Shown: positions 1 through 50,100 of the stretch, in pieces
Layout: every line of letters begins with the position of its first letter
How positions within the stretch are numbered: the stretch's first letter is position 1
Source of the DNA: Anthoceros angustus
Taxonomy: Eukaryota; Plantae; Anthocerotophyta
DNA: 64,000 bases
Reading direction: 5' to 3'
Assembly: GCA_010909165.1 (NCBI GenBank)
Contig: VJWM01000135.1
Coordinates: forward strand, 186,001 to 250,000
Made by a program: the position numbers and the translations under genes
Notes under the pieces: generated by a model
What the model saw: only the letters and a program-made list of their open reading frames with translations
Databases searched by the model: none
What the model was told of the DNA's origin: nothing

Positions 1-3000
1 AGCACCTTGAATATCCCCTGCATACAGATTTCACCTCAGAGAACCTGGCAGATCTATCTCCTCTATTTCACCCAATACAGATTGGAGCAACAGTAAAGCC
101 CATCTAAGTGAGATTCTGTAAAAGAGTTACCTTGATGCTTCGTCCATTCAGACATAACAAACGCCAGTGAATTGTCAAAGCCTTTAGCAGGAACACTGAC
201 AAGCAAGTCGATAAATTGCTCCACATTTGGTGCACTCATATGTATCTGCTTCCATGTGACAAGTGTGAACATGAGCCTGCCAACAGATTGAACTAGATGG
301 CACTGTGTAGCCTTGTCCCCAAGCAGAATTAATGCTTCTCTCTCGCACGTTGGGGCTTACCAGCCTGGCAAATACTAACAGCAATGAGCTCTTCAGGCCC
401 ACGAGTTGAGCAGTCTCCATACGTGCTACAAGAGCGGAGATCAGCTCCCGAACATGAGGCGCCATTTGAGCAGAGAGGTGCTGTACAAGGGACGTTACCA
501 AACTTCCAACAAAAAGCGATGCTGAGTTCTCCATCTCTGGATTCAGTAACCTGTCAACCCCACCAAACTTTGAGATTACTAGTAGGTGTCATAGTATCAC
601 TCCGACACCGGCAGGAACATATGTAAAGCACAGACACCTAGCAGCGGCATCCAAAAGAAGCCTCATGGACCGATCAGCATCCCCACTCCAACCCAGCAAA
701 GCTTCTCTGCCACCATTGATGAACGCAGCAAGACACTCCGTGGCATTCTGCAGAAATTCCCTGAAATCCCATTAGTCATCAAAAGTTGCCTGCTAGCTCA
801 GCACGCTTTCCCATCCAAGCAAGTCATCATCACATGCTTAGCCCCTGCAAGTAGATAAAAATGTACTATCATCCATGATCTTTATGAGAAACAAAGAAGC
901 TGAAGCTCATTACCTGTATCACTGAATGGTCATCGCTAACCACAACAAGATTGCAGATAGCAGGAAATGTTGCATCATGCACAGCCCGGATGATCTCAAG
1001 TGGTGCATCCTGCAGCGAAACGATCATGCATACTTACACGTCTGAGCTTTTGACATGATCCCTTCGGATCATTTCCCACAATGACCAGCTGTCTACACAG
1101 AGAGAACCATCTGAAGCACCCTGCCTAACAGTGGAGTGCTGGGTGCAGAGTCAAGAAACAAGGCACGGCTGTTCATACCTTCAAAAGCATTGTTATCAAG
1201 TCCAATGCTCCTGCTACCAAGCCTTCGGATGAAGGTCGGGGCTGTCCCGGAATTCAAACACAAGGTGAGTAAATACTACAACCACAGCACAATATGGGGG
1301 CAGACCATGGCATGGAAGCAGGAAGAGAATGGGAAGCAACCCACATTGGCCAGAACGGGAGACAGGACAAGCAATGCACGATGTGTCAGAGGCTCCCGAC
1401 ATCCAGGAACTTGACTAATACCCTGAATTCACAACAATGAACTTCAGTCTGTCTTCAAATGATTAAGCAATACGCTGAGAAGACATTTCAATGGCCAGAC
1501 GACCTCAAGTATCTCCAATGCATCAATAGAAATCACTGGATCTTGAACATTTTGTGCCCAAATATTGAGAACCAAAGGTGAAATTATGGATTCCACAGCT
1601 GCTGTTGCCTGCTCATCTGCATAGGTTTTCATGGACAAGTGCTACAATTCAGCTGAAGTCAAACAAAGATTGTCATGAAAGCCTGTTGTGAACAGAGTAA
1701 CAACACACCTACACTCACAGCACACTGTAAGGTCTCCAGCACCAAGTGCAGAGTTTCATCTGATGCCTGCGCGGCACAGACACGATCAGCATAGTCATGT
1801 GCTAAACACGATGCGCGATCCAAATTGCCTAGGAAGTGGAGATCCTATCTCTTATACCAACTTGTACATCACCCTGCTCTATATATAACCTAGCCAGAAG
1901 AGACAGACGTACGTAGCTGCAGTGTTCCTGTCGTAGAAGACAAAAAGCTTAAAGATAGGCTGACTGACCTGTTGCAAAAGTTTTCCAAGAGCATTGAACA
2001 CACTCCCCAATTGTGGTCTTAGGAATGCCAACTCAACTCGAGGAAACAATTCTGCTAGAGCTCGACAGGAACCCACCTTGATAGGTGCTGGTCTGCAGGT
2101 ATGACCATGGTCAAGCCGTTTAGCATTGTAAAGACTGATGAGCAAAAAGCATTCAACGCACAAAAACTTACGCTTCAGAGTTTAAACCCTCCATAGCAGA
2201 GAACAGAAACTGTTGAGACCTCTCCACCTTTATCTGTTAGTGAAATTTGGTGAAGATTTGCTGGGGCAGGGTTGAACTCAAACTGCTTCATTGCACATTG
2301 TCTGGAAATCTGTGAGGGAAAACACTTACAAGAGACGCAAATTTTGCGGCTGCCCATAATCCTCGGCCACGAAGAAAGGGGCACTGTGCCATACCTGCAA
2401 AGACGAGGGAGAACATGGCTGTTAGTTGGATCAACATTTACCAGCAATCCGTCACTAGCACGCATCGTGGTCCTATCAATTACATCAATCATTGTAACTC
2501 CAGTTCCAAAGAAGTTGACAACACGACATGTACCCTCCAAACGTGAGTGTTACAGAGTTACAGAGGGTTGAATGTTCAGACGAACCTGCACCTCCTAAGT
2601 CCTCAATGAGAACACTTTCGAGAAATGCTTCCAACTGCAATTCACCAGATCCTGCCTCTTCCTGGACGAACAATGACAAGTTGTCAGCTCCAACAGTGAT
2701 GTAGTTCAACACCGGCCTCCAAAAAAGATATAAGAATCCTTGTGTTCATGCTAAGAATCTACCTGTGCTTCAAGGAGGGCATCTGCAACGCTTCCAAAAG
2801 CCAAAATTGACGCCTCCCTCAACTGTTTCATAAAAATTGATATAAAAAATGGCACACAAGAGGCTGTGAACAAGCTGGCCAGTTGACCTGACTTTGGATC
2901 TGCGTCAGAAGATACTTCACACACCACAAGTGCCCCAAACGCAGGCCCACCAAAATGGTAAAAAAACGACAGGTCTTGAGCACACCTTCCACCAAGCTGT

Positions 3001-5864
3001 CTGCCCCAAAGCCTTAGCTTTGCTAGATTCCTCAAGCCGTTGTTTAACAACATCAGAAATTGATTGTAAAGCTTTCTCACCAAAGGCTTGTACTAGCTCC
3101 TCCAGCAGCAAAATCCCTGATCCATCCTTGCACAGTTGCAAAGTCAGTCAAAACCAACTTTAGTACATCAGTACTGAAACGCATTATGCAGAAGGGCGTG
3201 ACTGTTTAACCTGAAACTCTGCAGCTGTACGTCACATCATCTTCATCTGCCACATACTGATTTGGGTCCGTGGACCAGGTTTGCACCTGCAACCAAAGCA
3301 TCAGGTCAGTTTCTTCCAAGACAGTGAAACAGAACAACAGCAGTGCACAGCTAGGTCTCCAAATGCAATGAGGTGACCACACAGCCCTTGGCCTGATAAT
3401 AGGTGTACTTCCAAGACCAGGCAGATAAAAAATGCCAAGAACTTGCAAAACCTTGCCTGATCCTCAGTCATTTGCATATACCCAATTGTATAGTAAACGA
3501 GGTTGGCAATGTGCTCATATACCACCTGCAACAACAGAATTCTGTCTATGAAACTGTGAATTGCAGGTTATGAAGCGACAGAAAGCAGCCAATGGATCAT
3601 GAAATAAGCCTGAAAATGCCAAATGTCAAATGTGACCCATACCCTGCTAAAACGAGGGCTCCCAACCAAGGCCAGGAGAAACTCAAAAAGCTACATCCAA
3701 GATCAAAAGTCATTTAGACACCAAAGCGTCAAAATCGTGAGGTACAGATGAAATTGAGAGATGCAAAACAGGTATTGTGTGTCCTATCGCCAAAACACGG
3801 CTCCAATCACCTGGATTATTAGAGTCTCTAAGCTCTGATCACTGCCATCTGAATCAGCATCATCTGCAAATGACTCTCTCGCTTGGTGAATGCAGGCTAT
3901 CTCGTAGACCTGAAGGCCCGACACAACAGTCTGCCACAAAGGTCCAAGCACCACTGGACATCACCAGCACACTACATTTAGCCATGTTCCAAGTAATCAG
4001 TTGCATTCATATGTCAACCAATGCACTAGCTTTTACCTGGCAGCTCTGCCGCTGCTAATCTTGGGAAATTGTGCACAATGTGGAGCAGACACTTCAGAGT
4101 CTGCAAAAGAGAGATGCTTTGTTTTAGACGACTGCATACCATTTGAGCAACTGTCGATGCAAGACAGACATTAAAGACATAAAGTACAACTTCACCTCGA
4201 CTCTCAGACACCAATCTTTAGGATCTTCTAGCGGAACCGGTGGAGAGAGGATGAGAGCAAATTGTTCCATCCAAGACTTGAGCATGGGTGCCATTAAATT
4301 CCTCGTTTCTAACTGCAGGACATCAGACATCCTTAAGAGATCCCCAAGCTGCTTTCAACAACTGGATATAGATAACAAGGAAATAAGAATGTGAGATAGC
4401 TAGCAGAGCCCAAGACCTGAGCTTGGAAAGGAAACCAAAACAGACAAACCCCACTAGTGAAAACTCACGATATAAGCCCCACTCATCACCCCAAGAGTAG
4501 CTATGCAGCTGTGAAGGACTATGAGAGCTCGGCGCGTCATCCCAGAGTCATATTCCTGAAGATGTCGAACAAAGATTGTGTCACGTACTTGTCAAATTTC
4601 TAGGGCCTATCCAAAAACAGAGAGAAGACAAAGAAACTCACTTTCGAAGATATTATGTCATAGAGGACAGGAAAGAGAACGGGTACAAGGGAAGGCACTT
4701 GTGAGTCATCCAAATCACAGGCGAATAGAGAAAGACACCTCAGTGCTCCATGGACTGCACAACATGAACACCGGTGCACACTTTGACCAAAGTTTGAAAG
4801 CAATACAATCAAGAACTACAATTTGAACAACTGTAGAAATACAGGAGTTGCCTTGACCACGGCCTGCAAACTTGCATATGAGTGCATTTGCATGTGATCA
4901 AAAGACCCCTGTTTCTGACACACCTCTGTTCTGATCACCTTTGGCACTGATAAACGCCACAAGGTAATGCATAAGATCAGGCCATTCCTCTGGCCAGTCA
5001 TGGACTGCAATAGCAGCAATTGCCATCCCAACTGCGGTTCGTATTTTCCCGGTTGGATCTTCTAAAGCTGGTGGCAGAAGACTACGAATGGCTGCCTGCA
5101 ACACCGGATTTGTCATGGGTAGAGCTGCCTGTTACAATGCTCTGAGGGTCGTATACATTGACTGGCAGCAATGGCAGCAACATTCAGTGGCTTCATCTGA
5201 TGGGGAAGTTGACTGGTAGCAATGGCGGCAATGTTCAGTGGCTTCATCTGATGGGAAAGTGAGCGTACCTTATCCTCAGCTGATGCTACAGGTGGCACAT
5301 AGTTAGTATCATCTTCCTGCCAATGCTGCTTGACGAACTGTTTCAATAGCACTGCAGCTAAGTGGGACAGTTATGGATGCAATGTCATGAAAGTGAGCAC
5401 TCCCTACGGCTTGAAACACTCCCCCAGACAGACATCACATCTGCATCACACAGAAAGACCAACCGGGAACAGCAAGACATAGCACCGTATCTGCGTCTCA
5501 TAAAAGACCTTCTGCCAAGGATATCTGCCTCAGGCCCAATTGTACTTCCTTATTCACAGTGACTTTGGCAAGGGCCACTCCATAACCTGAGACAAAGCCA
5601 AGCAACTCCTCAAAGCCAAGGATAAAAAAGTTACTGTATCACCCTGGACTGTCCGGGGTCCAGGATGATACAGTGAGCAGAAAGCCTAAGAGCCTGTGCT
5701 GTATCTCAGCAGGAGATGATCCACAAGATCACACCTGGCTGCGTCGCTGCTTGCTTCAGCGCTTCCTCAGCAGCCCATCGTGTCTCCAAGCCGGGGTCCA
5801 GGGAGGCACTGAGGCAGTTTATCAGCCACAACTGGCCTTCATCCACATTGACAAGAGTATTCAT
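1..5864 (-). CDS. IPO9: Importin-9 (importin-beta family, HEAT/ARM repeats); multi-exon, 3' end beyond the window start
   Basis: ATG at 5864 gives MNTLVNVDEGQLWLINCLSASLDPGLETRWAAEEALKQAATQPG. Later exons read LLKQFVKQHWQED, KIRTAVGMAIAAIAVHDWPEEWPDL, VHGALRCLSLFACDLDDSQVPSLVPVLFP and HMSAPNVEQFIDLLVSVPAKGFDNSLAFVMSEWTKHQG, all matching plant importin-9. GT-AG introns. Confidence 0.92.
5160..5262. repeat. 51-bp imperfect tandem duplication in an IPO9 intron
   Basis: gactggcagcaatggcagcaacattcagtggcttcatctgatggggaagtt is followed by gactggtagcaatggcggcaatgttcagtggcttcatctgatgggaaagtg. Confidence 0.85.
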
Positions 5865-6737
5865 TGTCCCTCTCTGACTCTCCGCTTCACCCTGTGCAGC
5901 GAGTCAAGGTCCCGCTTCTACAAATTTGAGCTAACATAATCGGCCCCGACACTACGAAGACACCCCTCACCACTCTAGCCTGGGCGGGCGATCAATTTCA
6001 CACCAGCAGCAAATCCTCCTCCTAAAATCACTGTGCACCCAATCCAGCCCAAGACCGACGCAGCTGGATTCCACGAATTACAAGAATCCCCTCAATTCCA
6101 ACGCCTGAGGCGCAGAAGCAATCCTCGTAACGTCCAGAAATTTCCGACCGCTTGCAGCAAGAATTGATCGCCCACGAAGTGACACCGAGCTCCGGCGATC
6201 TTGCATTTAGCGCTCGCCTACGACCACGACTGGATGGCCATCGATGAAGTTGCGAACGCTTAAACCCCAGGCTGGAGCGAGGGAAGAGTGGCGGCGCAAC
6301 TGGCGCATTCCGCCGCCCGCTTGCGCCCGAGGTTGTTACCCGGCGGAACCCGGGCGAGCCTCGCGGGCTGTCCTGCATCCCCTTTCGCCAGACCAGCGTC
6401 CCCGTTTTGCCGCAAGAATTGCGTCTTTTCAGCTTCCGGGGAATGAACCGTTGGGCAGGGACAATGTGAAACACGGGTCCGGTTACCGAAACCCCTGGTT
6501 GCAGCTCCGCAGGCAAGCAACCACGCTATGCGGTGCCAAACGGTGAGAGGATCCGCGTTGGAAAGCGGGCCCGTGTAGAGCTGTCGCCTGGCCTGACGCG
6601 CGTAGCCCGCAGAGATCGAGGCGGGGAACGCTGCGCAGGTTTTCGCGCTGCCGGTGCCGCGATTTCTGAGTCGTGCATGCTAGTGTGATTCAGCTGACAG
6701 TGCTCATCGGCCCGTGGAAGCAGAGGCGGCGAGCAAA

Positions 6738-7966
6738 ATGCAGTGCTTTCGCAACATGTTGCGCGATTTGCAGGTCCTGCGATCCATATGGTTTGCCAAA
6801 ATCGAAGGGGAGTCGCACAAGGAGCGGCTGGAGTCGTTCTACGGGCCTCAAGCGGACGCCTGTGAGTGCCTGCCTGATCACGGCCGCGGCCTGGTGCGAT
6901 TCGCATGATTTTGGCAGGGTTTTGATGGAGTTTTGGATTGCCGTGCAGACGATCACTTCAGGTCTAGGTTTCTCCATGGCAGGACTGGCCTGCTCAAGTC
7001 CTGCGCTCTCCGGTTGCAGGCGCTGGCTGACCGAGGGGGCCTGGTTTGGGTGGACCTCGGCGGCGGCACGGCTGAGAATGTGGAGATGATGGGACGCTAT
7101 TTCGATCTGAACAAGTTCGAGAAGATTTACGTCGTGGACATCTGCGGCCCTCTGTGCGATGTTGCCCGCAGGAAGGCTCAGGTCCGGGGTTGGACCAATG
7201 TGGAGGTTGTGGAGGCGGACGTGTGCTCGTTCGAACCGGAGCTGGGGCCGGCTAAGCTCGTCACTTTCTCCTACTCGCTTTCCAGTTAAGTTGTGATCAC
7301 ATCAGATTCTGTGATGCAAGTCTGTCAATTTGCTTCCTACTCAGTTTCCAGTTATGTTGTCTATGATCAGATTTGCAGAAGCTAGGTCTGCATGTTATGG
7401 AGCTTCGCGAGGAACGTTTCCACCTTGCTTGTCCTCCTTCCTTCCTGCTGACCTGGCCGTTTCTCTGCAGTGATTCCTCCTTTTATGGACGCTGTTGATA
7501 AAGCAGCATCGTACTTGGACCAGGAAGACGGCATCCTTGGAGTTGCAGACTTCTACACTTCGCAGAAGTTCGACTCCGCGGACAGGCAGCACGGCTATCT
7601 CACTCGGTGGTTTTGGAGCACTGTTTTCGACTTGGACGGCATCGACTTAGCTCCTTCTCGGAGGCTTTACCTGGACCATCAGTTTCAGCAAGGCGAGTAA
7701 CTCGAACCTCACTCAACTCCTTCACTCACTCACTCATTTCCTTCCCTTTCTCGGTGGATCGTCTCCATCCACCTGGTCACCTTCCCTGTTGCTCGTGTGC
7801 TTCTGGACTGTGACCCGACCTCATCACCTTCTCCCGCACTGCAGTGTACGAGAGCAACTCTTCCGGCGGCATCCCTTATGTGCCGCTGCTGAAGGTGCCC
7901 TACTACATCTGGCTGGGCAAGAAAAGGTCGGCCACTGTGATGAACGGCAGCGGCAATCATCTGTAG
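6738..7966 (+). CDS. BTA1: Betaine lipid (DGTS) synthase BTA1-like; only the N-terminal BtaB-like SAM methyltransferase domain
   Basis: Exons 6738-6861, 6949-7284, 7471-7692 and 7845-7966 give ...LRSIWFAKIEGESHKERLESFYGPQADAYDHFRSRFLHGR...VWVDLGGGTAENVEMM...VTFSYSLSMIPPF...GVADFYTSQKFD...VYESNSSGGIPYVPLLKVPYYIWLGKKRSATVMNGSGNHL*. This closely parallels the N-terminal half of Chlamydomonas BTA1. Confidence 0.9.
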
Positions 7967-9950
7967 AGGTCAAATCGGCGAGGCAGTGTGCACCACTTCC
8001 GGCCACCCCTCCACTCCACCGCACAGTGCACTGAGATGCGAGGGAGACTGCCACTGCCTAGGCAATCCGACACGATCTGCGGTAACCGGACTCACAGCAG
8101 GCACTCGGACGCAGGTAGCGGGGTAGGCGGCCTGTCGGCGTGGAGAGCGGAGAACCACTTGTTTCTTCACGTCCTGCTGCAGAGGGTTGTTTTACTTTGC
8201 CCCAGCTGCCACAAGAGATGCCGGGAGCAAGGGGAGCAGCAGTGCAGTAAGTAGCCATGCTATGATCCCCCCCGTTGTGCGCACTGCTGTTTATGCGCCT
8301 TCGCTCACGGCGATGGCATGCCGCGTGCAAGAGGGATGGTAGGTGAAGTTTGTAATGGGAATTGGGATTGGGATAGGGATGAGAGTATGTTTTGCATCCG
8401 TAGACTATGTTATGTACATACATATGTTCATGCGCAGTACGGGTGTAACGGTGCAGCACTCGTACCGGTCAACGCCAACAGGATGCCGGGTACCTAAGCG
8501 GCGAAACGGAGAAACGAGAGGCATGCGCGCGAGAGCGAGAGCCAGGGGGGTTGGGAAGCCACTTGTAAAAACGGCGCAGGAGCAGGTTTTGCGGCTCGGG
8601 AGCTCATCCCATGGAATACTGGCGGGCCAATCATGTCCAGGCGAGGTATGCATGGCTGCATTTAACGTTGCTTGGTATATTTTATGAATGAGCAGGTTAG
8701 AATTGGTGACCTGTGATGGTGGTGGGCCCGTGGTGGTGGTGGGGCCTGCAGTGTGCTTGCGCCGGGAAGGGGTTTCGCCCGCCTCGTCGGCAGGAGGAGG
8801 GGAGACGGCGAGTAGATATCGAGGAAGAAGCAGAAGCGGAAGAACGGGAGAGCGGGGACGGAGGCAAGAGAGTCCGGCAGGAAGACGAGCTCGAGGCGTG
8901 ACCAGATCCGATCGGGAAAAGGCGAGGTGGAGCAATCGCGTCGGCTCGGCAGGGGAGGGAGGCGGGAGGGAGGGGTGGAGTGGCCCGGCCTGGCCTGTGA
9001 TTGGGCGGGTGGGCGGTGCGGAATTGCAGTGTGGTGAAGAGGAGCTGGAGCCTGCCAGGTCCTCGGGCCATGGCACATTGGAGCCCCGCGGCAGCTGTAG
9101 CGTCCTATCAGCGCTTCATCGGGCCCTCCTCCGTCTCGCTCTCCGCCTCCCACGTCTCCGGATTCTCGCTCGCCTCCGCGCTCCGCAGCTCGGTGGGCCT
9201 CTTCCCCCAGCCTCGTGTTGAGCCAGCCGCATTTTGGCCTGGAATGCGGGGTGCGGGATGGAGGGAGATGGTGGCGTGTGTGTGGGGTGTGACAATTTTG
9301 CCCATCCCGTGGTTCTTGTCCCTGTGGGTCGGTGGAGTGGGACTGTGGGTTTTGGGGGTTGCTGTCCGTGTTTCGAGACCATTACCTCTGCACTTGTAGG
9401 CTGAGTGAGCCGAGGTGTTGTCGGTAGCAGCGTAACGCCTTGGCTGTTTGAAGAGATTGCGTCTTGGCTATGTCGGTTTGATTTTGTTGTTTGCCTGTCA
9501 TGCCTTTCTTTCTCACCCCGTCCCCTCGTGGGTGAGCCTCTCCCGGCCTATGCTCTTGGTGGGACAGGGGGTCGAAAGAATCCGGCCACAAGTCTATGAT
9601 GATGGCTAGGGTGTTGCAAGGCTGTAGGTGATGTGCGCTGCAGCTCGCAGTTCTGATCCATGGCAATGGCGCTGTTGCTTAATTTCGTTCTTCTCGGGTG
9701 TACAAGATAGGGTTCATCCAGCCAGGATTGTCCCGAATTACGTACCTACCTTGCAGGAGGTTGATGTTGGCTGTTCCGCATTTTTGCAGTTGGTGAGCTT
9801 CACTGCTGCCAGCGTGGTGGCACAACAGGGTTCAATGAACTTTCCACCTGCTCAGGTTCCTGATCAGTAAGCTGTCTGAACTTGGCCCCGTTCCGTTCTT
9901 TGTCCTTCTCTTTATGTTGGCTCTTTTCTAGCTGAAGGGCATGTTGATGC

Positions 9951-10980
9951 ATGGGCGGAGTATCCAATTGGATGAAAGGACTCGGTGGGGGTGCGGCTCG
10001 TAACGTTGCTTATGTAACTTTGTCGTCTTGTTGCCTTGTCAACTTCAGACCTAGCCCATGGAGGTTTGTACGGTGGCGTAAAGCACAGGAAAGGCAAAAA
10101 CCTGTCGCGCCCTCTAAGAAATGTACGTCTGTGCTTTGTTTCCAAAGCCACTGTCTAGAGTCGTGTACTTTCCCTCTCTTCCCCTGCACACATCTCTGTA
10201 TGGAGAAAAAGTTGAGCGTTTGCACGTTGATGGTGGTGTGCAGCTGAACAGAAGCAAGGGAACTTTGTGTACAAAGTCGTCCCTGGTGAAGATCTTGCGG
10301 ATGTTGCGGCTAAGTTCAACACTTATGTTGAGGTCCTCTTGGAGGTATGGCCCACAGTTTGCGTCCTGTGGTGATTCTTACTTCAGCAGAAGGATGCTGA
10401 ACGTCCTGTGTGCATGACTGCAGGCAAACCGTATTCTCAATCCAGAAAATGTTGCGCCTGGCCAGCTTCTTTGGGTTCCTCTGACCTATCAGATTAAATG
10501 GGTAAGTAAGACAGGCCGACTTGCACCGGAATTCTCGTCAAACTGCATCTTGCCTGCAGTGCCCATGGATCTCACATCACCTTCTTCCTTGCAGGGAGAT
10601 ACCCTATGGTCTCTGTCCCGAAGATTTGGAGTACAGATCGAAACAATTCAGGCAGCTAACGGCATCCAAGACAGGAACTTGATATTCGCTGGTAAGGGAG
10701 GGCGCTGTTATCCTAGTCAGTCCATTCAGCATTCTCCTGACTTCGCATGGGTCATCAGCATGCATCCCCCTAGATCATACCCAGAATCTGAAATTTCTCA
10801 TGGCATCTGGTGGCAGGTGACATTATGGTTATCCCAGACGAGCCACTGGCCGCCTATTGATGCCCGGCTCCTCGTCTTGATTCTAACATGATTGCTATTT
10901 GGCTATGGCATCATGTGGCAGGTGATATCATCGTCATCCCAGACGAGGCCCACATTGACGAGGTTGGGATGATCGATTAG
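9951..10980 (+). CDS. Small protein with two LysM motifs; N-terminus uncertain; two alternative terminal exons
   Basis: Exons 10244-10344, 10424-10501 and 10595-10691, then 10817-10860 or 10922-10980, give FVYKVVPGEDLADVAAKFNTYVEVLLE-ANRILNPENVAPGQLLWVP and TYQIKW-GDTLWSLSRRFGVQIETIQAANGIQDRNLIFA-GDI(M/I)VIP. An upstream in-frame exon probably starts at ATG 9951. Confidence 0.8.
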
Positions 10981-11757
10981 AACTACAGACAGGGTGGGGT
11001 ACAAGTTGCTTGCCCTTTGTACATTCCGATCGTGCCACATCCACCGACACCTAGCTACTCCCCAGTTCCCATTCCCCGCAGATTGCAAACCACGTTTTGA
11101 GTGTCCAGCTGCGAACCCCATCGATTCTGGTGTTTGTTGTACATGTTCAATCCTCGTAGTCAGTAATTGGATCCCAGTGAAGTAAGCCTTGACAATATCT
11201 TGTTTGAGTCATTGTTGCAAACAATCCGCGTATTGAATTGTAGCACTCCACTGTCCGCTGTGCCGGATGCCTTTACTGATGTGTAATCCATCCGTGCCAC
11301 GAGGCAAGTGTCCAGTAGACTGTTGGCGCGTTGCCCCTGCGTTTCGTCATGCACACATGGAATCCGGAACCCGAGTTAGGCCAGGTGGTTTTGGGTAGCC
11401 TTTCTTTGACGTCCTTCTCCCGGCGACCTTCCTGTCGAGCTTCCTTCTTGCAGCATGCTGCTCCTTTTTTTTTCTTCTTGGCTTCCAAAATCGAGCGAAC
11501 TGCAATGTGCGAGCTGCTGCTCTCTGACATCTCTGGATCGCTTACGCTGGGGAAGCAACAACTGCAATTTCGCTTGCAGGAGCGAGGGTTTTTCTTGGCT
11601 TTGAAAGGATTTTCGTTTCTGCTTGGAGAGCGTCACATTTCTTGATCAGGGAGTGCGGAATCCGCTGACGGGAGTCAAAATTGCGTGCTGAGGAAACGCG
11701 CGGGAAGAGGAGGAGAGGCTGGAGGAGGCGCAGGTGGTGTAGCATTCGGGAATCAGG

Positions 11758-14000
11758 ATGGTCGGGCACAAGGATGGCAGCGATCCTAACACCCTGGGCC
11801 GCCATATTGCACGCCGGCTGGTGGAAGTGGGAGTGAAAGATTTCTTCAGCGTGCCGGGGGACTTTAATCTGGTGCTGCTGGACAATCTGATAGCAGATCC
11901 GGGCCTGCGTATGATCGGCTGCTGCAACGAGCTCAATGCCGGCTACGCAGCGGATGGCTACGCCCGGGCCATGGGAGTCGGCTGCGTGGTGGTCACCTTC
12001 ACCGTGGGAGGCCTCAGCGTCATCAACGCCATCGCCGGCGCGTACAGTGAGAACTTGCCTGTGATTTGCATCGTAGGGGGCCCCAATTCTAACGATTTCG
12101 GTACCAATCGGATTCTGCACCACACCATCGGCACTGCAGATTTCTCCCAGGAGCTGCAGTGCTTCCGGCAAGTTACGTGCTACCAGGTGCGCTGATTTCC
12201 TGCATGCAGATTTGACTCAGGCTTGCTGGCAGAATGCAGGTGCTGACCTGGACCTGGTGATGGCTTTTTTTCAGGCCGTGGTGCAGAGCCTGGATGAGGG
12301 ACACGAGCTTGTGGACCGGGCTATCTCGACTGCCATCAATGAGAGCAAGCCAGTCTACATCAGCATCAGCTGCAATTTAGCGGGGCTGCCTCATGCCACC
12401 TTCGTCACGGACCCTGTGCCTTACGCGCTGACGAGAAGGTGCGATTCGGGAGCTTGTGACCCACAAAAAGCAGGCGATTGCTGGATTCGACCTGCGGCTT
12501 GCCTGCTCATGTACTTGGTTGACGCGCAGGACTAGCAACGCACTGAGCTTGCAGGTGGCGACTGATGCCGCGGCAGAGTTCTTGAATGGAGCCGTCAAGC
12601 CGGTGCTGGTCGGGGGCCCCAAATTGCGTGTTGCCAAGGCAGGGAAGGGATTTGAAGAGCTTGCTACTGCTTGCGGGTACCCGGTGGCTGTGATGCCGTC
12701 TGCCAAAGGACAGTTTGATGAGGAGCACCCGCATTTTATCGGCACGTACTGGGGAGCCGTGAGCTCGCCGTATTGCTTGGAAATTGTGGAATCTGCGGAT
12801 GCCTACCTATTTGCAGGACCAATCTTCAATGACTATAGTTCTGTCGGATACTCGCTCTTGTTCAAGAAGGACAAGGCGATCATTGTCCAACCTGATCGGG
12901 TCTTCATTGGAAATGGACCTGCATATGGATGCGTTCTCATGAAGGAGTTTCTGCCTTTGCTTGCCCAGAAGCTGAAGAAAAACACCACAGCTTTTGACAA
13001 CTTCAGGCGCATTTACATTCCTCCCGGGTTGCCTCTGTCGGCAGAGAAGGATGGCCCGTTGCGGGTTAATGTCATGTTCAAACATATCCAGGTTGGTCTT
13101 GAGAAAAGCAATTCTGGCTGCCATATGCATGTCCCCGCACATGAGTCTTATCCCAAGTGTGATACTTCTCCGTTTTGCAGCAAATGCTCACCGGAGACAC
13201 AGCAGTGATAGCCGAAACGGGAGACTCATGGTTCAACTGTCAGAAGCTGAAGCTGCCACATGGATGTGGGTGAGTTACATTTCCCTCAAAATTGTGGTTC
13301 ACATAAATTACCACTGGTCATGTAGGGTTCTAAGCTGCACTACAGGTATGAGTTCCAAATGCAGTATGGATCCATAGGGTGGTCGGTGGGTGCGACCTTG
13401 GGATATGCTCAAGCGGCTACGGAGAAGCGAATCATTGCGTGCATTGGAGATGGAAGTTTCCAGGTGTGCTTTAGAATGATTTCGCTCTTCCAGATTATGG
13501 TGTCCCTGTATTTTCCAACTACTCATGCTTTGGGTTTCATCACCTGCAGGTGACTGCACAGGATGTGTCGACCATGATCCGGTATGGGCAGAAAAGCATT
13601 ATTTTTTTGATCAACAACGGAGGTTACACGATTGAAGTGGAGATTCACGATGGACCATATAATGTTATAAAAAACTGGGATTACACTGGTGTTATCAATG
13701 CCTTTGTGAATGGGGAAGGCAATTGTTGGACCACCAAGGTAGAATGCTGCACCAAATGGCGTCTGTTGATTGTGTATTGCGTTGATTGTTAGTAGCAAAA
13801 GTCCTAATAATCAACTTCCAAATGGGTGTCAGGTTCAAACCGAGGAGGAACTGGTTGAAGCGATACACACAGCACACGAGAAAGACGATCATTTGTGTTT
13901 CATAGAGGTGATTGTCCACAAAGATGACACCAGCAAGGAGCTGCTGGAATGGGGATCACGAGTTTCCTCGGCCAACAGCAGACCACCAAATCCACAGTGA
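11758..14000 (+). CDS. PDC: Pyruvate decarboxylase (TPP-dependent), 7 exons
   Basis: [83 protein letters not shown] motif IGDGSFQ...[18 protein letters not shown] and C-terminal [20 protein letters not shown]. Confidence 0.97.
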
Positions 14001-29760: not shown

Positions 29761-32700
29761 AAATGAATTGCATGCAAAAGCACCAAGTGACAATCGTTTT
29801 TTTCCCTTTCCATGTTGAACATTATGCCTCCTTTTTTGCTTCTCTTCACTTGATCATTTTTCGAATTCCACAAATTATATGGTTTTACTGATCTTATAAG
29901 TTACCTCACTAAGGGTCATGCTATCCTCCATAGCTACAAGAACATGCCATGCAACCTCCTTTTCCAATCTTATGACTACACCTTGTAGTCCTTAGAAGCC
30001 TCACCTTCCAAGGTGACAGCCCTTCTTGGAGGGCTGATATACTTACTCTCTGTTTCGTTGCGGGCCTTTGTCTGGCCATGTGTGCTTGCTGAAAGAGGAC
30101 AACAACTAATAAACAGCAGCAGCAAGAGGACTCAATAGACAACAAGCAATTAATGGACAGCAAACAAAGATATGAAGAAGCTTACGCATTGCTGCCTGCT
30201 ACTTCTTATTGTGGTATTCACGAGTACATCCTCCTCCTTCTCAACACTATGTCAAACCCTTGAAGAAGGTTGTGGCTCCTCGTTGACTGCTAGGTGTGTT
30301 CTGTTGCCCACGTTTAGAGAGTTTCTGATTCAAACAACAATATGCAAGATAGATCAACTTCCCCCAGTGGCTAGAGAAGCACATAGACATTTCAATATTA
30401 AAACCCCACAATTAAGTGCTTTGTGGGCGGATCAATATTGGGATGGGGTGCCATCCTTTACTCAAGTTGGGATCATGTATGGATATCTTCCCATTAAAGG
30501 GCGTGCTGGCCTCCCATGTGTGAGGTCATAGGTGCGAGATTACCTGTTGAAAAAAATTAAAAAAAAAGTTAAATAGAAATAGGCGAGGGCAAGAGGTATA
30601 GGTTGCTGCAACTCGAGCAAAAATTTCTACGAATAATCGTGAGTCCTCTATAAACGTTTGTTGACAGATACAATGAAAGATGAGAAGAATGACCTATACT
30701 ACTTCTTTGTGCAGATGACATAACCAGAGTGCTGAGAACCACCTTTTCTTTTGTGCATCCTTCTCTTGCAAGATGAAGATTGAGCAAGCAAGATGATGCT
30801 TTGGACGGATTCAGCAAATAAAATGAGTCTTTGGAGGGATTGAGCAAGTCAAGATGATTTGAGGGGAGCCACTTTGGCAGGATTGTTACGCGGTAATTTT
30901 AGGTAGAACTCAAATTTGAGTGTGTAGCACCCATTATCTTGCTAAACTTTTAGTTGTAATGTATGGTTTCATTCATGGTATCTTACCAAAATTCAGTCTC
31001 CAACACTTACAAGAGACAAAAAGTCTTATATGTCACCTAATAGGATTCTAAGTATGATGTTTATGACTGTCATAAGCCTTGTGCATAGCTCTCAACTAAA
31101 TGTCTTGTGTCTTGGCACGCTTGTGTGAGAAGATGGGATGATCCCACTAGGCTTCACAATGTGTGACAAGGCTAGCAACTGCTGCGCAACGTGGACAGTC
31201 AAGATGGCAAGGCACACATACAGTGATCAGCTGTTAGTTAGTAGACATGGGACATGGCACCTCAAAGACAACAGTGACACGGTTAGTCTGCAAGAAAATA
31301 GCAGTGACGAAGCCAGCCAGCCAATACTCAACGAACAATGGAGAAAATGTGTACTTGGAGCCATGCTCCCGTAGGAGCCTTGTTCTCCTTTCATCTTGAG
31401 TTTCACTATTATAGCTCGAATGCATGATTCCCTAGGGTACAATTTGCAGAGCATCAAGGAGCACCTTCATTGAGAGCCCTTCGATCCCTATCCTCTGTCC
31501 CACAGGTAGAAAGGCACTCTCCCAATGTTGCCCCCCCTGCGTTATGCTCCAAATATCTTCCGAACATGATTTTTAAACACCTACCTAACAATACCTTGCT
31601 GCAAAATCCGATATATTTGCAACGAATGCAGACACTCGGATGACAAGTCACGAGGTGCTCAACCACAGCCAAATACATCCTTGGGAGTAGAAATAGCATA
31701 TGCCATGGGGAGCTGGAAGTTGGTTCATAGCTATAAGAAAGATCACATCTCTCCTATCTCGTCCTCCAATGCCGCCGGCCTGATGTTTCCTTCATAACCG
31801 AATCGATCGAATTGTGATTTCTTGGCAGCAGCAACAGGCCTCTGAAGTCGGGGTTTTAATGAACAGTGCTGCCGTGTCCACACAGGAGGGAAATCCCGTT
31901 CGGCATTTCATTAGAATTTTAGACATGGCGGGACAGGTAGCTGCCAGAAGAGCGGCACTGCGGTGGCAAGGACCTTGTGGGCCAATTTGAGCCATCGTGC
32001 GCGACTCGCGAGCGGGATAAAAACCAAGCAGCTTTCCGTTAATAGCAACCCTCGGCTATACAAGCGGCGAAACAGCGAAAAGAGGGCGAAACCTGTGGCT
32101 CACGATCCAACGGGACCCACTCCAGCATTGCGCGTGAAGAAGCGATCATTGGCCAGCCTCGACGTCGCAACGAATTGCCTAGAAAACCGGGTCCCCACCG
32201 TCGCCACCGACAGCTGGCGAAACTCGCGCTCTTTGCTTTCGCGCCCTTGTCGCCTATTCTCACACCGGTCTACTTGGCTGAAGCGAAGCGCTGGAGCTCG
32301 TTAGCCTAACTTCTGAGGCAGCTCGTCTCGACGGGAGCCGCGACTCGCGTCTCAGGCGAGGTCGGGTTCTGACGCAGTCTTCTTCTCTGAAACATCGACG
32401 GGCATTCGGGCGCTGTAGCGCAAGAAAGCATGCGGTTGCTGCATTAATTCCAGTGATATGATCAATTTTGTGATGCATTGCCGACAGAATCCGAGTGTGA
32501 TGTCTACAGGGAGCTCCCATGGTGCTTTAATTTGCTCTCCCTGGCAGAGACTGTGTTCGTTCGCATCCCCGTTTCAACTTGGAAGGACTGTGATCCTTGC
32601 GCCGCCGCTTGATCAAGTCTGAGCAGCTTGAGAGCTTTGCCTGCTTGGTTCCGTCCCGCGGCGCCAAATTGAATTGATTGCCATGTTTTTCAGCATCATC

Positions 32701-33060
32701 TTTCTTTCCCGCTCATCAAGACCAGTGGACCGGTCGGGAATCTTGATGCTCTTCATCAGCGCCTTCCGAGTGTCGCCGTCGAATGTTCCCCGCATCTGGT
32801 CTCGTCAGCTGTAGCGTTGTGGACTGGGAGCAGGAAGAAAGTGGATCGGAAGATTTCCAATTACTGCGCTCGGAGGTTTGCTACGAGATGGCGCCTCCGG
32901 AGCTCGATGTGCAACAGTTTTGAAGGCTCAGAAAGCCGTCACCAGGGAGAGATTTTGTGAGCTGCAGGATCCTGCCTGCGGACGCAGTTCCTGCTCTTGT
33001 TGTGTGGATATGCCGTTTCTCTGTTCCCATGCCTTTTGCTTCAAGCGGCCTCCTGGAACA

Positions 33061-35328
33061 ATGCACGGCCCCAAGGTTATCTGCTCCTTCCTTCTCGTCC
33101 TCGCTCTATGTTTGAAGGGGAGTGCTGTTGCTGCTCCTTGCCAGTCCAGCTGTGGAGGGAAAACCGTGTCGTATCCGTTTTCCCTGAGTCCTGGCTGCGG
33201 GCATCCTAATTTTCAAGGCCTGCTGGCATGCAACTCCGGGGCTTTGAATATGACAACACAATCTGGATCTTACTCTGTACAGTCTCTCAACTATTCTAGC
33301 CGCACGGTGGTGATCAGTGACTCCTTCCTCACCAACGGCAGGGGCTGCTATAAGGACATCTCTGATCGGAACTTCGCTGTGAACTCCAGCGGGCCACTCC
33401 AACTCTTCAACACAGTCTTTCTCTTCACAGGTTGTGACAGCAGCAACGGACCGTTTTTGACAGGTTCGCGAAACTATTACTGCAACTTTACCAGCGATGC
33501 TTGCAAGGCATATGAGAAATGTGGAGCTGGTCCGCCCCTTCGATTTCCTGGCTGCTGCACTCATAAAGCAAATCCAGTGGACAGCATCAATCTGCAGGCG
33601 CTGAATTGTTCCTCTAATGGTCCTACCTTGGGCTACACCTCGGTGGTTAACCTTAGTCCGGGGGACAACGCTTTAAATTGGGTGCACGGATATCAGATGC
33701 AATGGGATGCAGTTCAAACAACCAGCAGGCAATGCGCCACTTGCGCAGCAAGTAACGGTGCTTGTGGCTATGACCAGTCGTCCAAGGATTTTCTCTGTTA
33801 CTGCAGTGCTGGCTTGATACAGAACGCAACTTGTCCTCTTGGGGATTCAGCACCAGCACCGGACACTCCTGGCTCCCCTTCTCAGCCCTTGTCTCCCCCC
33901 TCCGCAGGTAAGCAGCTCAAAAGGAGTTGCCACCAATGGTTTGTGAGGTCAGGTTTGCCTTGTGACTGGTGTTGACCGGGTTGCTTTGTGCACAACCTGC
34001 AGGCTCTCCGAACCTCAAGAAGCGGGCGAGCTCTGTTCTGCCGATTGTGATAGGTAAGTTTGCATCTTCTTTTTCATCTATTGTTACCACCATTTATGCA
34101 GTAACCCGGGGCAGGAAGGTTGTTCTTGTTGACGCCTAACACATAAAATGCTGTATTGGCAGGCATTCTAGTTCCTCTAGGAATACTTGTTGGGGGCCTT
34201 GTTGGGTGCTTGCTGTGGAGACGCCGTCGCCCTACGGACAATGGGTTGGAAGGGAAGTTTGAAGGTTTTACACTTGATGATGTTGTCATGGAAGCAACAC
34301 TGCGGTTTACCTACAAGGAGCTAGTGGCCGCTACGAACAATTTCCGTGAAGAATTGGGCAAGGGAGGTTTTGGAGTGGTTCATAAAGGGGTGCTTGTCAC
34401 TGGAGAGACGGTCGCAGTGAAGCAGCTGCAAGGATCGAGGCAGGGGGAGAAAGAATTCCGCGCAGAGATGGCTGCTTTGGGGAGTATCCAACACAACAAT
34501 TTGGTGAGGTTGTTAGGATACTGTTTCGAGGGATCGCATAGGTTACTTGTGTATGAGTACCTGGTAAATGGTTCTCTAGACAAGTATATATTCCGCTCTG
34601 GCAATCCAAACAAGAAGCTGCCAGCCCTTCAGTGGATCCAGAGATTCAGGATTGCAGTAGACGCGACAAGGGGGTTGCATCATCTGCATGAAGGTTGCTC
34701 CAGGCAGATCATCCATTATGGCATCAAGCCTGCCAACATTCTGCTGGACAGCAGCTTTAAAGCTAAGGTAACTGACTATGGACTGACCAAACTCATGGAC
34801 AGTGATCAGGGCTCTCTCGTGTCTACCTTGCGTGGTACCCACGGGTATCTGCCCCCAGAGTGGACGATGGGAGAACGGTTCATTACCCAGAAGAGTGATG
34901 TTTACAGCTGGGGAATGGTGCTTCTGGAGATGGTTAGTGGGAGGTGGAACGTTGATCCTGACATCGTGGATGACGCAAAAATGTGCTATCCAGAATGGGT
35001 GCATCAGCAATTAGAGACGGGAGACATTGTGGAACTACTCGACAAGGATCTGCAGATCGAAAGGCACATGAGCAGGACTGTTGACCTGGAACAGGTGAAG
35101 CTGGTGTGCCGGATTGCTCTATGGTGTATTCAAGAAGATGTGTCGCTCAGGCCGACCATGAGGCTTGTGCTGCAAATGCTGGAGGGGATTGTCCCAGTGG
35201 AGAGCCCTCCATTTTCGTACCAGTCTAGAAGCGGCCTGTGCTCCACTTCCGGGGATCTCTGGGGCGAGCACAGCAACACGACCTCGCTCAGCAGCGTCAG
35301 CTTCGACTCAAGAACCCTCGTGAGGTGA
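33061..35328 (+). CDS. Receptor-like kinase with a GUB_WAK_bind/WAK_assoc Cys-rich ectodomain, TM helix and SD-2/LRK10L-like kinase domain; likely pseudokinase
   Basis: Exons 33061-33907, 34003-34053, 34163-35328. Signal peptide MHGPKVICSFLLVLALCLKGSAVA, CQSSCGGKTVSYPFSLSPGCGHP, CATCAASNGACGYD...FLCYC, TM VLPIVIGILVPLGILVGGLVGCLLW, LGKGGFG, VAVK, HYGIKPANILLD, DYG, GTHGYLPPEW. Confidence 0.93.
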
Positions 35329-47123: not shown

Positions 47124-50100
47124 TCAAGCACGAGTTCTCCTTGACTTGGCATGAACAGCCTTCGAATGAACAGCCTTCGAATGAACAGCATTGGCACGAC
47201 CGACCTTCGCAGGAACAACCTTTGGAGAGGTTTGGATAGACTTGCCAGCTTTGGCAGGTGGCATGTTGTATTTAATTGGTTCGATATGCACTCCCGCGCT
47301 CTTCACCTCCTGGAGTATGGTCAGCGTGGAATGATTAAATAGGCATCACATGAGGAGTAGGGTAAACAGCCAATCCGAATTCGAGTTGAAACACTTACCT
47401 TTGGAGCGATCAGATTCCGGAAAGCTTTGTCAGAGTTGAAATCGGGGCCAATGGGCACACGTATGCTTCGTTCATACACCTCTTTCGACTTGAAAGGAAA
47501 AGGTAGGGACTGTGTGCTGAACTTCCGGGCCTGCAAATTTTAGAACGAACGTGAATACCACTGCCCTAAACAGCGCAAACGAAGCATACCTTCTTATCCG
47601 TCAAGAAGCAATTCGACAACGACATTACCTTCTTATCCGTCTTTTCACTGATTATTACGTGCTTGAGTTTTGCATCTTTCCGAGCCTTCATTAATGCCTG
47701 TTTCTTTGCCTGGAGGTCTGCTCGCTCTTTCAAAATCCAGGACGGTAAACCATGGCGTTGCTGGACATCTGTCCACTGTCCCCAGCCCGGTAGGGCAACA
47801 GGGCCTTCTGCAGACGGTAATTCCTCATCCACTGCTTTGGCTTTCTCCTCTTGAAATTCCGCTTCAACATCATCGCCAGCAAAAGCTCGCTTGATCAATT
47901 CTTGCTGAGACTCAAGTCCATTACGCGTCCGACCATCTGTGGCCCCTTCGTCATCTTGATCTTCCTCATCATCACTAAGGAAGGCCATCTGTGAAGGTTC
48001 CGCCAGGGCAGCCGCCCTAGCACCAGTATCAGGTGACTCAACATCATGGGAATCCAGATGAACTTGCTTTTGCTTCTGCGAGGTAGCAAAAAAGACTTCA
48101 GGTGGTTGCAGAGAAGCCGCTTGCCCATTTCTCTCGGAATCTTTCATCATTCCCTGGTCTTTTGGCTTCAAATCATGCTTCTTAACGGACCCATTTGTAG
48201 AAAACAGCCTTGCATGGCCTGTTTTCATGTGCTGTATCCTAGAATCAGATGGCGATGGAGTAGACCCTTCCTCCAGACTGATCTTTTCAGCCAGAGGCTT
48301 ATTTTGGGTACTGGTCTTTACATCAATTGGCCCTATTGCGACTGTTTTGTGATTTGACTTGCCATTCATCTGCAACACCATTCCACATTGTGAGGACAGC
48401 AGGAGCCATCATCGTTCTCTCAGCAGTCAATATCCAATGCACAACAAAAGATGATCACAAGGTGAGTTACTTACCAGTGTTAGCTGTGCCCCTTCCCATC
48501 CAGTAGACTGGGCAGCTGTACCTTCATCCCTGCTACTGGCTTGCTTCACTGCTAGCCCATTTTTACCTTCATCCTCATCACTGTCTTCCCGTTCACTGTC
48601 ACTGCTTCCATCAACCAGCATATCATTCTCCGCGTCTTTTGGAAGTTTTCGCAAGACTTTAGTCTTCCCAAAAGAAAGCCGGCCTGATTGCTCATCTTCT
48701 TTACCTGCCTCCTCAGAGTGATTCTCAACAAAAGAATCACCATTTTCAGCGGAGTTAAGTTGCTTCAAAGCAGCTATTGCATTTTCTTGAGCCTCTTTCC
48801 TCTTTTTCTCGATTGCCCTGGCCTGCAAAGGTATATAGACCAAAAGCCAATCAGTACTTTGCAACATCTAACACGATTCCTCTTGATAAACTCATCCTAA
48901 GAACAGTGCATCTAAGCAAATCTTAGAAAAGCCATCACACAGGCTCACGTAAGCCATACCATGAATGGAAGAGCAAACAATCCTGAAGTTGGGATTTCAG
49001 CCTCCCCATCTCCCTCCAGAGCTTTCAAAGTTGCCACCTTAGCTTTGGCAAGAACCTTGGCCCTGGGCTTTCCTCCAGAATTGTCTTCACCCTTACTGCA
49101 GTCTTCTTCATCATCGCTTGTGCTATCATCATCACTGCTGCTGCTCAGATTAGCAGAATGAATCTTCTTAGTCAGAAGAGCATGGCTGCGAAGTTGTTCA
49201 GCAATTGCATCTCGCACACCATCATCTGCATGGGCTTGCAATCCTCGTTTCAAGATTCTCTTTGCCCATCGAGAGGTATTTTTGTGCTTCAAAGTCATCC
49301 TTTCCTGGAAGTACAGTGCTTTGTCAGAAAAATAACCTACACAAACAGATTCTACAAAAGGCCAAATGAGCAGATGGTCAATGACTGTGATCAACAAATG
49401 CACAACAGTACCTGAGCTCGCTTGAACTCTTGTCTCAACACAGCTTCTTTTCCAGCCTCCGGATCAGCTTCAGTAAGAGCTGACTCAGAATCAGCCTTCT
49501 TCTTCTGTGTCTTCAGAAGCAGGCGATGAAAGGTTTTAGACTTGATCTTCTTGATGCGTTTGGCTGCTAATTCATGCTTAAACAGAAGACTCCGCATCTT
49601 TGATAGTTTCTCCTGCCGCTCCTTAACTTCTTCAACAGAGAACTGCAGAAATCAGGCAACATAAGCACCAGAGGAAAAACTACTCCTGAAGATTGCAGCC
49701 GTTTCAGCCCCAGAGATGCAACGACAACAAAGACCTCTCCCGAGTACCTTGTTCAAAGCAAGTGCTTCAGCTGCTTGCACGGTACTCCCATGAGTTGATC
49801 CACTGTCCTGAAGCAAATTAGCTATATCCTTCTCCAGTTGATTTTTTGGTTGGAACTTTGCTGCAAGGGAAGCGGTGGACATAGCTGGAAGCTCTGGTTT
49901 TTTGTTGAAAACAAGACATGGCGCCTCTCGGTTGGCTTTCACCAAGGGCTGCCACTTTGTAATGTCTTCCTTGGTGTTTTCATACGCAGCCAACCTTTCC
50001 ACCTTCTCCTGTATCACTTTCCGCAGGGGCGGTTGTAGCCGAGTAGAACTGCGATTCAATTGCTCCGTACGCTTCCTCAAAGCACCAAGCCTTGGCTTGC

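Follow-up and report, generated by a model that had tools for sequence, protein, structure and literature searches.

The gene at 6738 to 7966 in a 64-kb stretch of Anthoceros angustus DNA (the whole 64,000 nucleotides analyzed are called the window below) was found to be intact, transcribed and correctly spliced, and its product was a BtaB-type class I S-adenosylmethionine (SAM) methyltransferase. Taken as a whole, the locus is probably best explained as an ancient, BTA1-derived, stand-alone BtaB-type N-methyltransferase that would likely serve DGTS methylation in trans. Eukaryotic DGTS synthesis has been described as the work of a single bifunctional BTA1, with separate BtaA and BtaB proteins in bacteria only (PMC10685587, PMC8752610). 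Searches of the searchable literature by locus tag and by the term 'BtaB-like' returned no paper on a stand-alone BtaB-like family, which in streptophytes is apparently undescribed.

Gene structure and transcripts

The gene was delimited from the open reading frame listing, the sequence and RNA contigs. It comprised four exons on the + strand, running from an ATG at 6738 to a TAG at 7964-7966 (Table 1). The spliced coding length computed from the RNA-confirmed exon coordinates was 801 nt, equal to 267 codons, for a product of approximately 267 residues. Exon 1 aligned to the N-terminus of both stand-alone (solo) and fused BtaB domains.

Table 1. Coordinates of the BtaB-like gene in the window. 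X2 and X7 are RNA runs (X7 from a related species); L001 and L002 are loci of solo genes, and L005 is the locus of a fused BtaB-BtaA gene.
Feature	Position	Strand	Evidence
5' UTR, minimum extent	6711..6737	+	X2 RNA contig 10 begins at 6711, X7 contig at 6717
Exon 1, coding part	6738..6861	+	ATG, 41 codons and first base of a split Tyr codon; joint 6861/6949 with GT..AG ends, X2
Intron 1, GT-AG, phase 1	6862..6948	+	Spliced contig; position and phase the same in L001 and fused L005; matching donor in L002
Exon 2, SAM-binding Rossmann core (VDLGGGT, VVD, ADV, TFSYSLS)	6949..7284	+	Pfam and phmmer; 17/18 key positions kept
Intron 2, GT-AG, phase 1, splits the Met of S-M-IPPF	7285..7470	+	Joint 7284/7471 in X2 and X7; conserved in L001, L002 and L005
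Exon 3, BtaB-specific segment (IPPF ... DF ... RQHGYLTRWFW ... FDLDGIDL)	7471..7692	+	tblastn E 1e-10 to 1e-22 to BTA1/BtaB; 8/8 key positions kept
Intron 3, GC-AG, phase 1	7693..7844	+	X2 joint 7690/7843, equivalent through 2 ambiguous letters to 7692/7845
Exon 4, coding part, VYESN...IPYVPLLKVPYYIWLG, 13-codon tail, TAG 7964-7966	7845..7966	+	Sequence, tblastn, comparison of loci
3' UTR, about 470 nt	7967..8436	+	X2 contig 11 unbroken from 7843 to 8436

Public RNA runs were mapped on 5800-11799. One of these, X2, shares its sample with the DNA run X1, and the spliced X2 contigs supported all three introns at the joints given in Table 1. An 877-nt X2 contig was continuous over 7843-8436, so that a candidate internal donor at 7926 and the stop codon were both read through into the 3' UTR. 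The transcript possibly starts further upstream of 6711; X2 depth was zero at 6400-6599. It was again zero at 8600-8999, and the contigs of the next gene started at 9011.

A 1295-nt contig from the related species (X7, mostly 90-99% alike) had an identical exon structure. Among the differences listed between this orthologue and the window, 16 changed codons were synonymous and 15 nonsynonymous. This count would imply a roughly three-fold depletion of nonsynonymous change and suggests moderate purifying selection, the figure being an indicative one taken from the differences listed.

The donor of intron 3 was GCGAGT, as confirmed by spliced contigs; the orthologous introns of L001, L002 and the fused L005 had GT at this position.

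An earlier sequence-only reading of this DNA had placed the end of similarity to BTA1 at PYYIWLG, with the TAG at 7964-7966 following 13 codons on, and this was borne out by tblastn with fused BTA1 proteins, in which all four exons were aligned in order. The gene had also been called a stand-alone, BtaB-only gene, and the X2 contigs agreed, since the mRNA contained no splice to a BtaA exon. The same contigs showed the copy to be expressed, which disposes of the unexpressed truncated paralog that had been named as a finding that would refute the idea.

Search for a BtaA half in the window

A BtaA profile HMM was made from the BtaA halves of 18 fused proteins and run with --max on all stop-to-stop six-frame pieces of the window, where nothing better than E=6 was obtained. 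As a positive control, the same HMM detected exons of 28-46 aligned residues in L005 with E 1e-8 to 1e-19. The window was also searched by tblastn with nine fused BTA1 proteins (word size 2, E up to 10), and only noise was returned for the BtaA part. The tblastn search and the controlled HMM search both confirmed the previous statement that the window holds no BtaA-like segment.

A stretch of 14-15 residues at 32635-32729, resembling the BtaA GVPxxQxxLI motif, was matched by several tblastn queries. The BtaA HMM with --max did not report this stretch, and a WAK-type receptor-kinase ORF lies just downstream of it, so that it was put down to chance. Weak matches to the PYY motif on the minus strand, at 48951-49085, were likewise rejected as chance.

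The BtaB and BtaA (DUF3419/PF11899) domains that make up BTA1 were not found on one polypeptide here, as the frame stopped at 7964-7966, the mRNA ran on into the 3' UTR and the window contained no BtaA match.

A stand-alone BtaB-like family in streptophytes

Exon 2 was searched by phmmer against 1.84 billion representatives, and fused BTA1 proteins of 600-750 aa were returned at 50-63% identity (E 1e-24 to 1e-32). The best matches were short ORF-style calls reading into the intron after FSYSLS, two of them from Sphagnum fallax and Psilotum nudum. For the family search, an alignment containing the window exons as separate rows was used, with P0009 as the frame. The complete proteins recovered were mostly of 250-275 aa, with E 1e-99 to 1e-149, and two shorter models had 214-220 aa; the tier below this solo family consisted of bacterial BtaB at E about 1e-70. 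Solo members were from mosses and liverworts (Sphagnum jensenii, Ceratodon purpureus, Marchantia polymorpha, Riccia sorocarpa and Calypogeia fissa), ferns (Psilotum nudum, Adiantum capillus-veneris and Ceratopteris richardii) and charophyte algae (Mesotaenium endlicherianum, Spirogloea muscicola and Chara braunii). The named solo matches were confined to lineages reported to make DGTS. No solo-clade member from a seed plant, a lycophyte or Physcomitrium was among the named matches, which is a lead and not a demonstration of absence.

The database entries of the solo clade included Marchantia polymorpha MPTK1_8g09310 (P0183), Chara braunii CBR_g8751 (P0195), Ceratodon M758_9G166600 (P0181) and Sphagnum fallax BDL97_02G031900 (P0001, an intron-retaining model). 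These entries resembled the window gene: they were 68-75% identical to its exons, belonged to its length class and ended at an equally early stop. They were annotated merely as hypothetical or methyltransferase-domain proteins, and the window's own species was absent from the named entries. An exact-sequence look-up of the Sphagnum fallax model P0001 matched no contig.

At the genomic level, the same four exons were found in the solo loci L001 and L002-L004, the latter three from a eukaryote in metagenomes. The stop followed PYYIWLG after 13 codons in L001 and after 4 codons in L002. A BtaA profile search found no match anywhere in the 19.4 kb of L002; the fused gene of L005 runs on directly into DUF3419 exons. 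The window gene shared the characteristics of the solo clade, namely a length of approximately 250-275 aa, a stop 4-13 codons past PYYIWLG, four exons, three phase-1 introns and a Val in place of an Ala after the motif-II Asp.

Phylogeny and origin

A maximum-likelihood tree was inferred with IQ-TREE under LG+C20+F+G4 (a quick version was made too) from 65 rows and 255 profile columns, comprising solo proteins, the BtaB halves of fused proteins and a bacterial BtaB outgroup, with window exons 2 and 3 entered as separate rows. The solo clade was recovered with support of 99/88, or 99/94 without Chara. The land-plant solo clade (99/98) included window exon 2, and exon 3 fell inside the 99/94 clade. 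The BtaB domains of streptophyte fused BTA1 proteins formed a clade (96/96), and the solo and streptophyte fused clades were sisters with moderate support only (88/70). Bacterial BtaB was the outgroup (100/100), lying outside the eukaryotic BtaB domains among which the window exons were nested. A 250-aa BtaB-only protein of Selaginella (P0197, SELMODRAFT_409019) grouped with the Selaginella fused gene, outside the ancient solo clade, and is therefore a separate event or a partial model.

Three phase-1 intron positions were common to the solo genes (window, L001 and L002) and the fused L005, the intron-1 acceptor of L002 being unread. The first splits the Tyr codon that follows FYGPQA.A, the second the Met codon of S-M-IPPF and the third the Val codon preceding YE.N. 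From the tree and the common intron positions together, we infer that the BtaB-encoding 5' part of fused BTA1 was duplicated at the DNA level in an early streptophyte, and that the family began with this ancient event. The duplication would predate the divergence of Charophyceae, Zygnematophyceae and land plants, and the solo copy would have been retained beside fused BTA1 ever since. Transfer of a bacterial btaB, retroposition and a recent split were each considered as the origin of the gene, and were ruled out by the tree and the introns common with the fused gene.

Fused BTA1 in lineages with the solo gene

Searches with the BtaA half of P0016 and with the Ceratopteris protein returned fused proteins of 620-715 aa. 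Among bryophytes, these were from Marchantia (named betaine lipid synthase), Riccia, Calypogeia, Sphagnum and Ceratodon; among lycophytes and ferns, from Selaginella, Diphasiastrum, Ceratopteris and Adiantum; and among algae, from Mesotaenium, Spirogloea, Closterium, Klebsormidium and Chlorokybus. Fused BtaB-BtaA BTA1 was present in every named lineage with the solo gene. Mosses and ferns carry type B (BtaB-BtaA) BTA1 (PMC8752610, PMC10685587).

The Chara braunii protein CBR_g36906 (P0408, 468 aa, 'DUF3419') was considered as a BtaA-only protein and rejected. It keeps the last 100 residues of the BtaB domain, and so is a 5'-truncated model of a fused gene.

A second X7 contig matched the window at 6816-6865 only and then diverged on both sides into BTA1-like coding sequence (...MWFNSIKG..., ...RFRANFLHGR...). 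This contig is probably the fused BTA1 of that related species.

Residue conservation and fold

Exon 2 scored 28.2 bits against Pfam Methyltransf_25 (cut-off 27), and the class I core motifs VDLGGGT, VVD and (E)AD were all present. Family-specific positions outside the generic SAM fold, in the motifs RL..FY..QA..YD.FR, TFSYSLSMIP, DF, R..FW, FD.D and PYVP..PYY, were kept as well, exons 1 and 4 aligning to the N- and C-terminal motifs. A column counted as conserved when it reached at least 90% in fused BtaB and at least 85% in bacterial BtaB. By this measure, 51/54 columns were kept in at least 90% of solo proteins, and the window kept 39/40 of those covered by exons 2-3, from which the window gene product is probably an active N-methyltransferase. 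Of 27 key positions, 26 were kept in nearly all solo proteins, the sole exception being a clade-wide change of Ala to Val after the motif-II Asp, in the GDA motif.

An AlphaFold2 model of the Marchantia orthologue (74% identical) was made from a 38-row alignment and was confident (pLDDT 91.4, pTM 0.89). In the model a helical segment at the N-terminus precedes the Rossmann core, and a beta-hairpin at the C-terminus carries PYVP..PYY. By fold, the model matched generic class I methyltransferases in the PDB (TM 0.5-0.6, 12-19% identity), among them the amine N-methyltransferases OvoM and NTM1, and the nearest were small-molecule and N-terminal amine methyltransferases. A sequence search of the PDB returned no solved relative, and NCBIfam contained no BtaB model and gave generic UbiE-like matches at most.

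Bacterial BtaB resembles the window gene product in standing alone, in its length of approximately 240-260 aa, in having the same class I core and in having the same family-specific motifs. The planctomycete BtaB proteins listed had 40-45% identity to the first sequence of the family query, and 54 columns were common to bacterial BtaB and BTA1. In Rhodobacter sphaeroides, RSP_0857 is given as BtaB, S-adenosylmethionine:diacylglycerylhomoserine N-methyltransferase (Klug & Benning 2001 and Riekhof 2005, as cited in PMC9892843 and PMC10685587). Unlike bacterial btaB, the window gene is eukaryotic, has three spliceosomal introns in common with BTA1, derives from a fused eukaryotic gene and has no adjacent btaA.

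The BtaB domain of type B BTA1 (Chlamydomonas CrBTA1, Chlorella kessleri CkBTA1 and Marchantia P0299) belongs to the sister clade, at the 50-63% identity to exon 2 given above; intron positions and phases were identical to those of the window gene, and the SAM-binding and BtaB-specific residues were the same but for one. The window gene differs from BTA1 in lacking the BtaA half, its protein ending 13 residues past PYYIWLG. The solo clade as a whole also differs from BTA1 in the signature Ala-to-Val change and in having DICGPLC instead of DLCxSLC.

Decay of the BtaB half in fern fused BTA1

In five fern fused BTA1 proteins (P0324, P0330, P0318, P0335 and P0337, from Ceratopteris, Adiantum and three close relatives) the BtaB half was decayed and the BtaA half normal. 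The BtaA HMM score was about 455, and the BtaB score was approximately 200 instead of approximately 400. The first 50 or so profile positions of the BtaB half were missing, and 16-20 of the 27 key positions were kept. Changes included post-I Asp to Asn (4/5 proteins), motif-II Asp to His, and MIP to R-x-R/G. The Ceratopteris fused protein (P0324) fell below every Pfam methyltransferase threshold and had a branch length of 1.5 in the tree. Among the best 120 matches, no named fern fused copy had an intact BtaB half. The fern solo proteins were intact.

Ferns are reported to contain DGTS (PMC8752610, PMC9892843). The simplest reading of the decay would be relaxed selection on the fern fused BtaB half, the solo enzyme being able to supply the methylation in its place. 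A tentative extension, which we regard as possible but rather doubtful, is that the solo protein is a true diacylglycerylhomoserine N-methyltransferase acting in trans, the sole one in leptosporangiate ferns, where the BtaB half of fused BTA1 no longer has its acidic SAM-binding residues or its N-terminal 50 residues, and a means of separately regulated methylation elsewhere. If so, fern DGTS synthesis would be a functionally split two-protein pathway, reversing the classic BtaB-BtaA fusion.

Neighboring genes in the window

Downstream of the BtaB-like gene, a multi-exon LysM-domain gene (Pfam LysM, E 2e-11) was found at 9011-11165 on the + strand. It was separately spliced, and the RNA contigs showed two alternative acceptors, at 10816 and 10921, after a donor at 10690. 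At 11478-13500 (+) there was a gene for a thiamine-pyrophosphate enzyme (TPP_enzyme_N, E 5e-30), pyruvate decarboxylase-like and highly represented in the RNA run. Upstream, 184-6235 on the - strand contained an apparently multi-exon gene whose first coding ORF (5709-5864) resembled an importin-beta N-terminal motif, unconfirmed by Pfam. This gene would stand head-to-head with the BtaB-like gene, approximately 475 bp apart (6235 to 6711). Further along the window, two long ORFs at 32878-35328 (+) were wall-associated receptor kinase-like, with a Cys-rich extracellular part followed by a kinase domain; a chance BtaA-like 15-mer at 32635-32679 lay directly upstream of them.

Probable function and alternative explanations

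Because almost all residues common to bacterial BtaB and the BtaB domain of BTA1 are kept, the solo protein would be expected to share their DGTS chemistry, binding SAM and methylating diacylglycerylhomoserine stepwise to DGTS. Working in trans on what the BtaA domain of BTA1 produces, it would add to the methylation capacity or place part of it under different regulation. As judged from sequence, the most likely function is to N-methylate diacylglycerylhomoserine in trans with SAM as the donor, a view held with middling confidence. The fern pattern of a decayed fused BtaB half and an intact solo protein fits a methylation role. Some observations speak against a simple DGTS role. Marchantia BTA1 is induced by phosphate starvation (PMC10550880), whereas no P1BS element (GNATATNC) was found between 3482 and 13400, a stretch that includes the promoter of the solo gene. 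Bryophytes have long kept the solo gene together with an intact fused enzyme, which suggests that its role is in part non-redundant. The Val that replaces Ala in the GDA motif throughout the clade could adjust the specificity for substrate or product.

These same observations, namely a coexistence with intact fused BTA1 that predates the divergence of Chara and land plants, the clade-specific Val next to the motif-II Asp and the promoter without P1BS, would also fit a neofunctionalized paralogue, an active N-methyltransferase whose substrate is no longer diacylglycerylhomoserine but another amine, such as the head group of a different lipid or a soluble derivative of an amino acid, and many substrate classes are represented among the nearest solved folds. 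This alternative, the main rival, is possible but on balance unlikely: 51/54 BtaB-family positions are unchanged, those outside the SAM-binding core among them, seed plants and lycophytes were absent from the named solo matches, and redundancy with the solo enzyme is the simplest account of the decay of the fern fused BtaB half. The sequence-only reading had offered a repurposed solo methyltransferase as one of two explanations. Its solo architecture stood, and the near-complete retention of BtaB residues argues against a large change of substrate.

The other explanation offered was a fissioned, two-gene DGTS pathway in this land plant, in which DGTS would be made by this BtaB and an unlinked BtaA in place of a fused enzyme. 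That the 64-kb window holds no BtaA and that the solo gene is expressed on its own would agree with it. It was not sustained and is very unlikely, as the solo gene is an ancient paralogue found from Chara to ferns in a clade separate from the fused one, fused BTA1 occurs in every named solo-bearing lineage (the apparent BtaA-only protein of Chara being a truncated fused model), and the related species X7 expresses a second paralogue with BTA1-like sequence. It is more improbable still that the locus is a truncated dead copy, a decaying and functionless remnant of BTA1 duplication; the missing BtaA half and the nonsynonymous half, or about so, of the listed changed codons might be read that way, but the frame is open over four exons, the spliced transcript was abundant enough to assemble in two species, orthologues from Chara to ferns keep 26/27 key residues, and the 16:15 count is consistent with a depletion of nonsynonymous change of the order given above. 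Least credible of all is a mis-delimited gene, in which AAAAG|GTCGGC at 7926/7927 would serve as a donor within exon 4 and be joined to BtaA exons far away, the product being a normal BTA1. A GT does follow AAAAG just past the PYYIWLG motif, and fused genes splice shortly beyond the same point; against this, X2 and X7 contigs cross 7926/7927 with no joint and continue 470 nt into the UTR (rare isoforms could hide from contigs), no BtaA exon lies within 56 kb downstream, the next gene is the separately transcribed LysM gene, and L001 and L002 stop at the same place.

An ancient stand-alone N-methyltransferase derived from BTA1 therefore remains the preferred explanation. A stand-alone BtaB gene extending from Chara to ferns would be an unrecognized component of the DGTS pathway in non-seed plants, or else a sister enzyme with another amine substrate. 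Such a gene could explain in concrete terms why the methyltransferase half of fern BTA1 has decayed, and Marchantia MPTK1_8g09310 would be an easy genetic target for work on membrane remodeling under phosphate limitation and on the loss of betaine lipids in seed plants.
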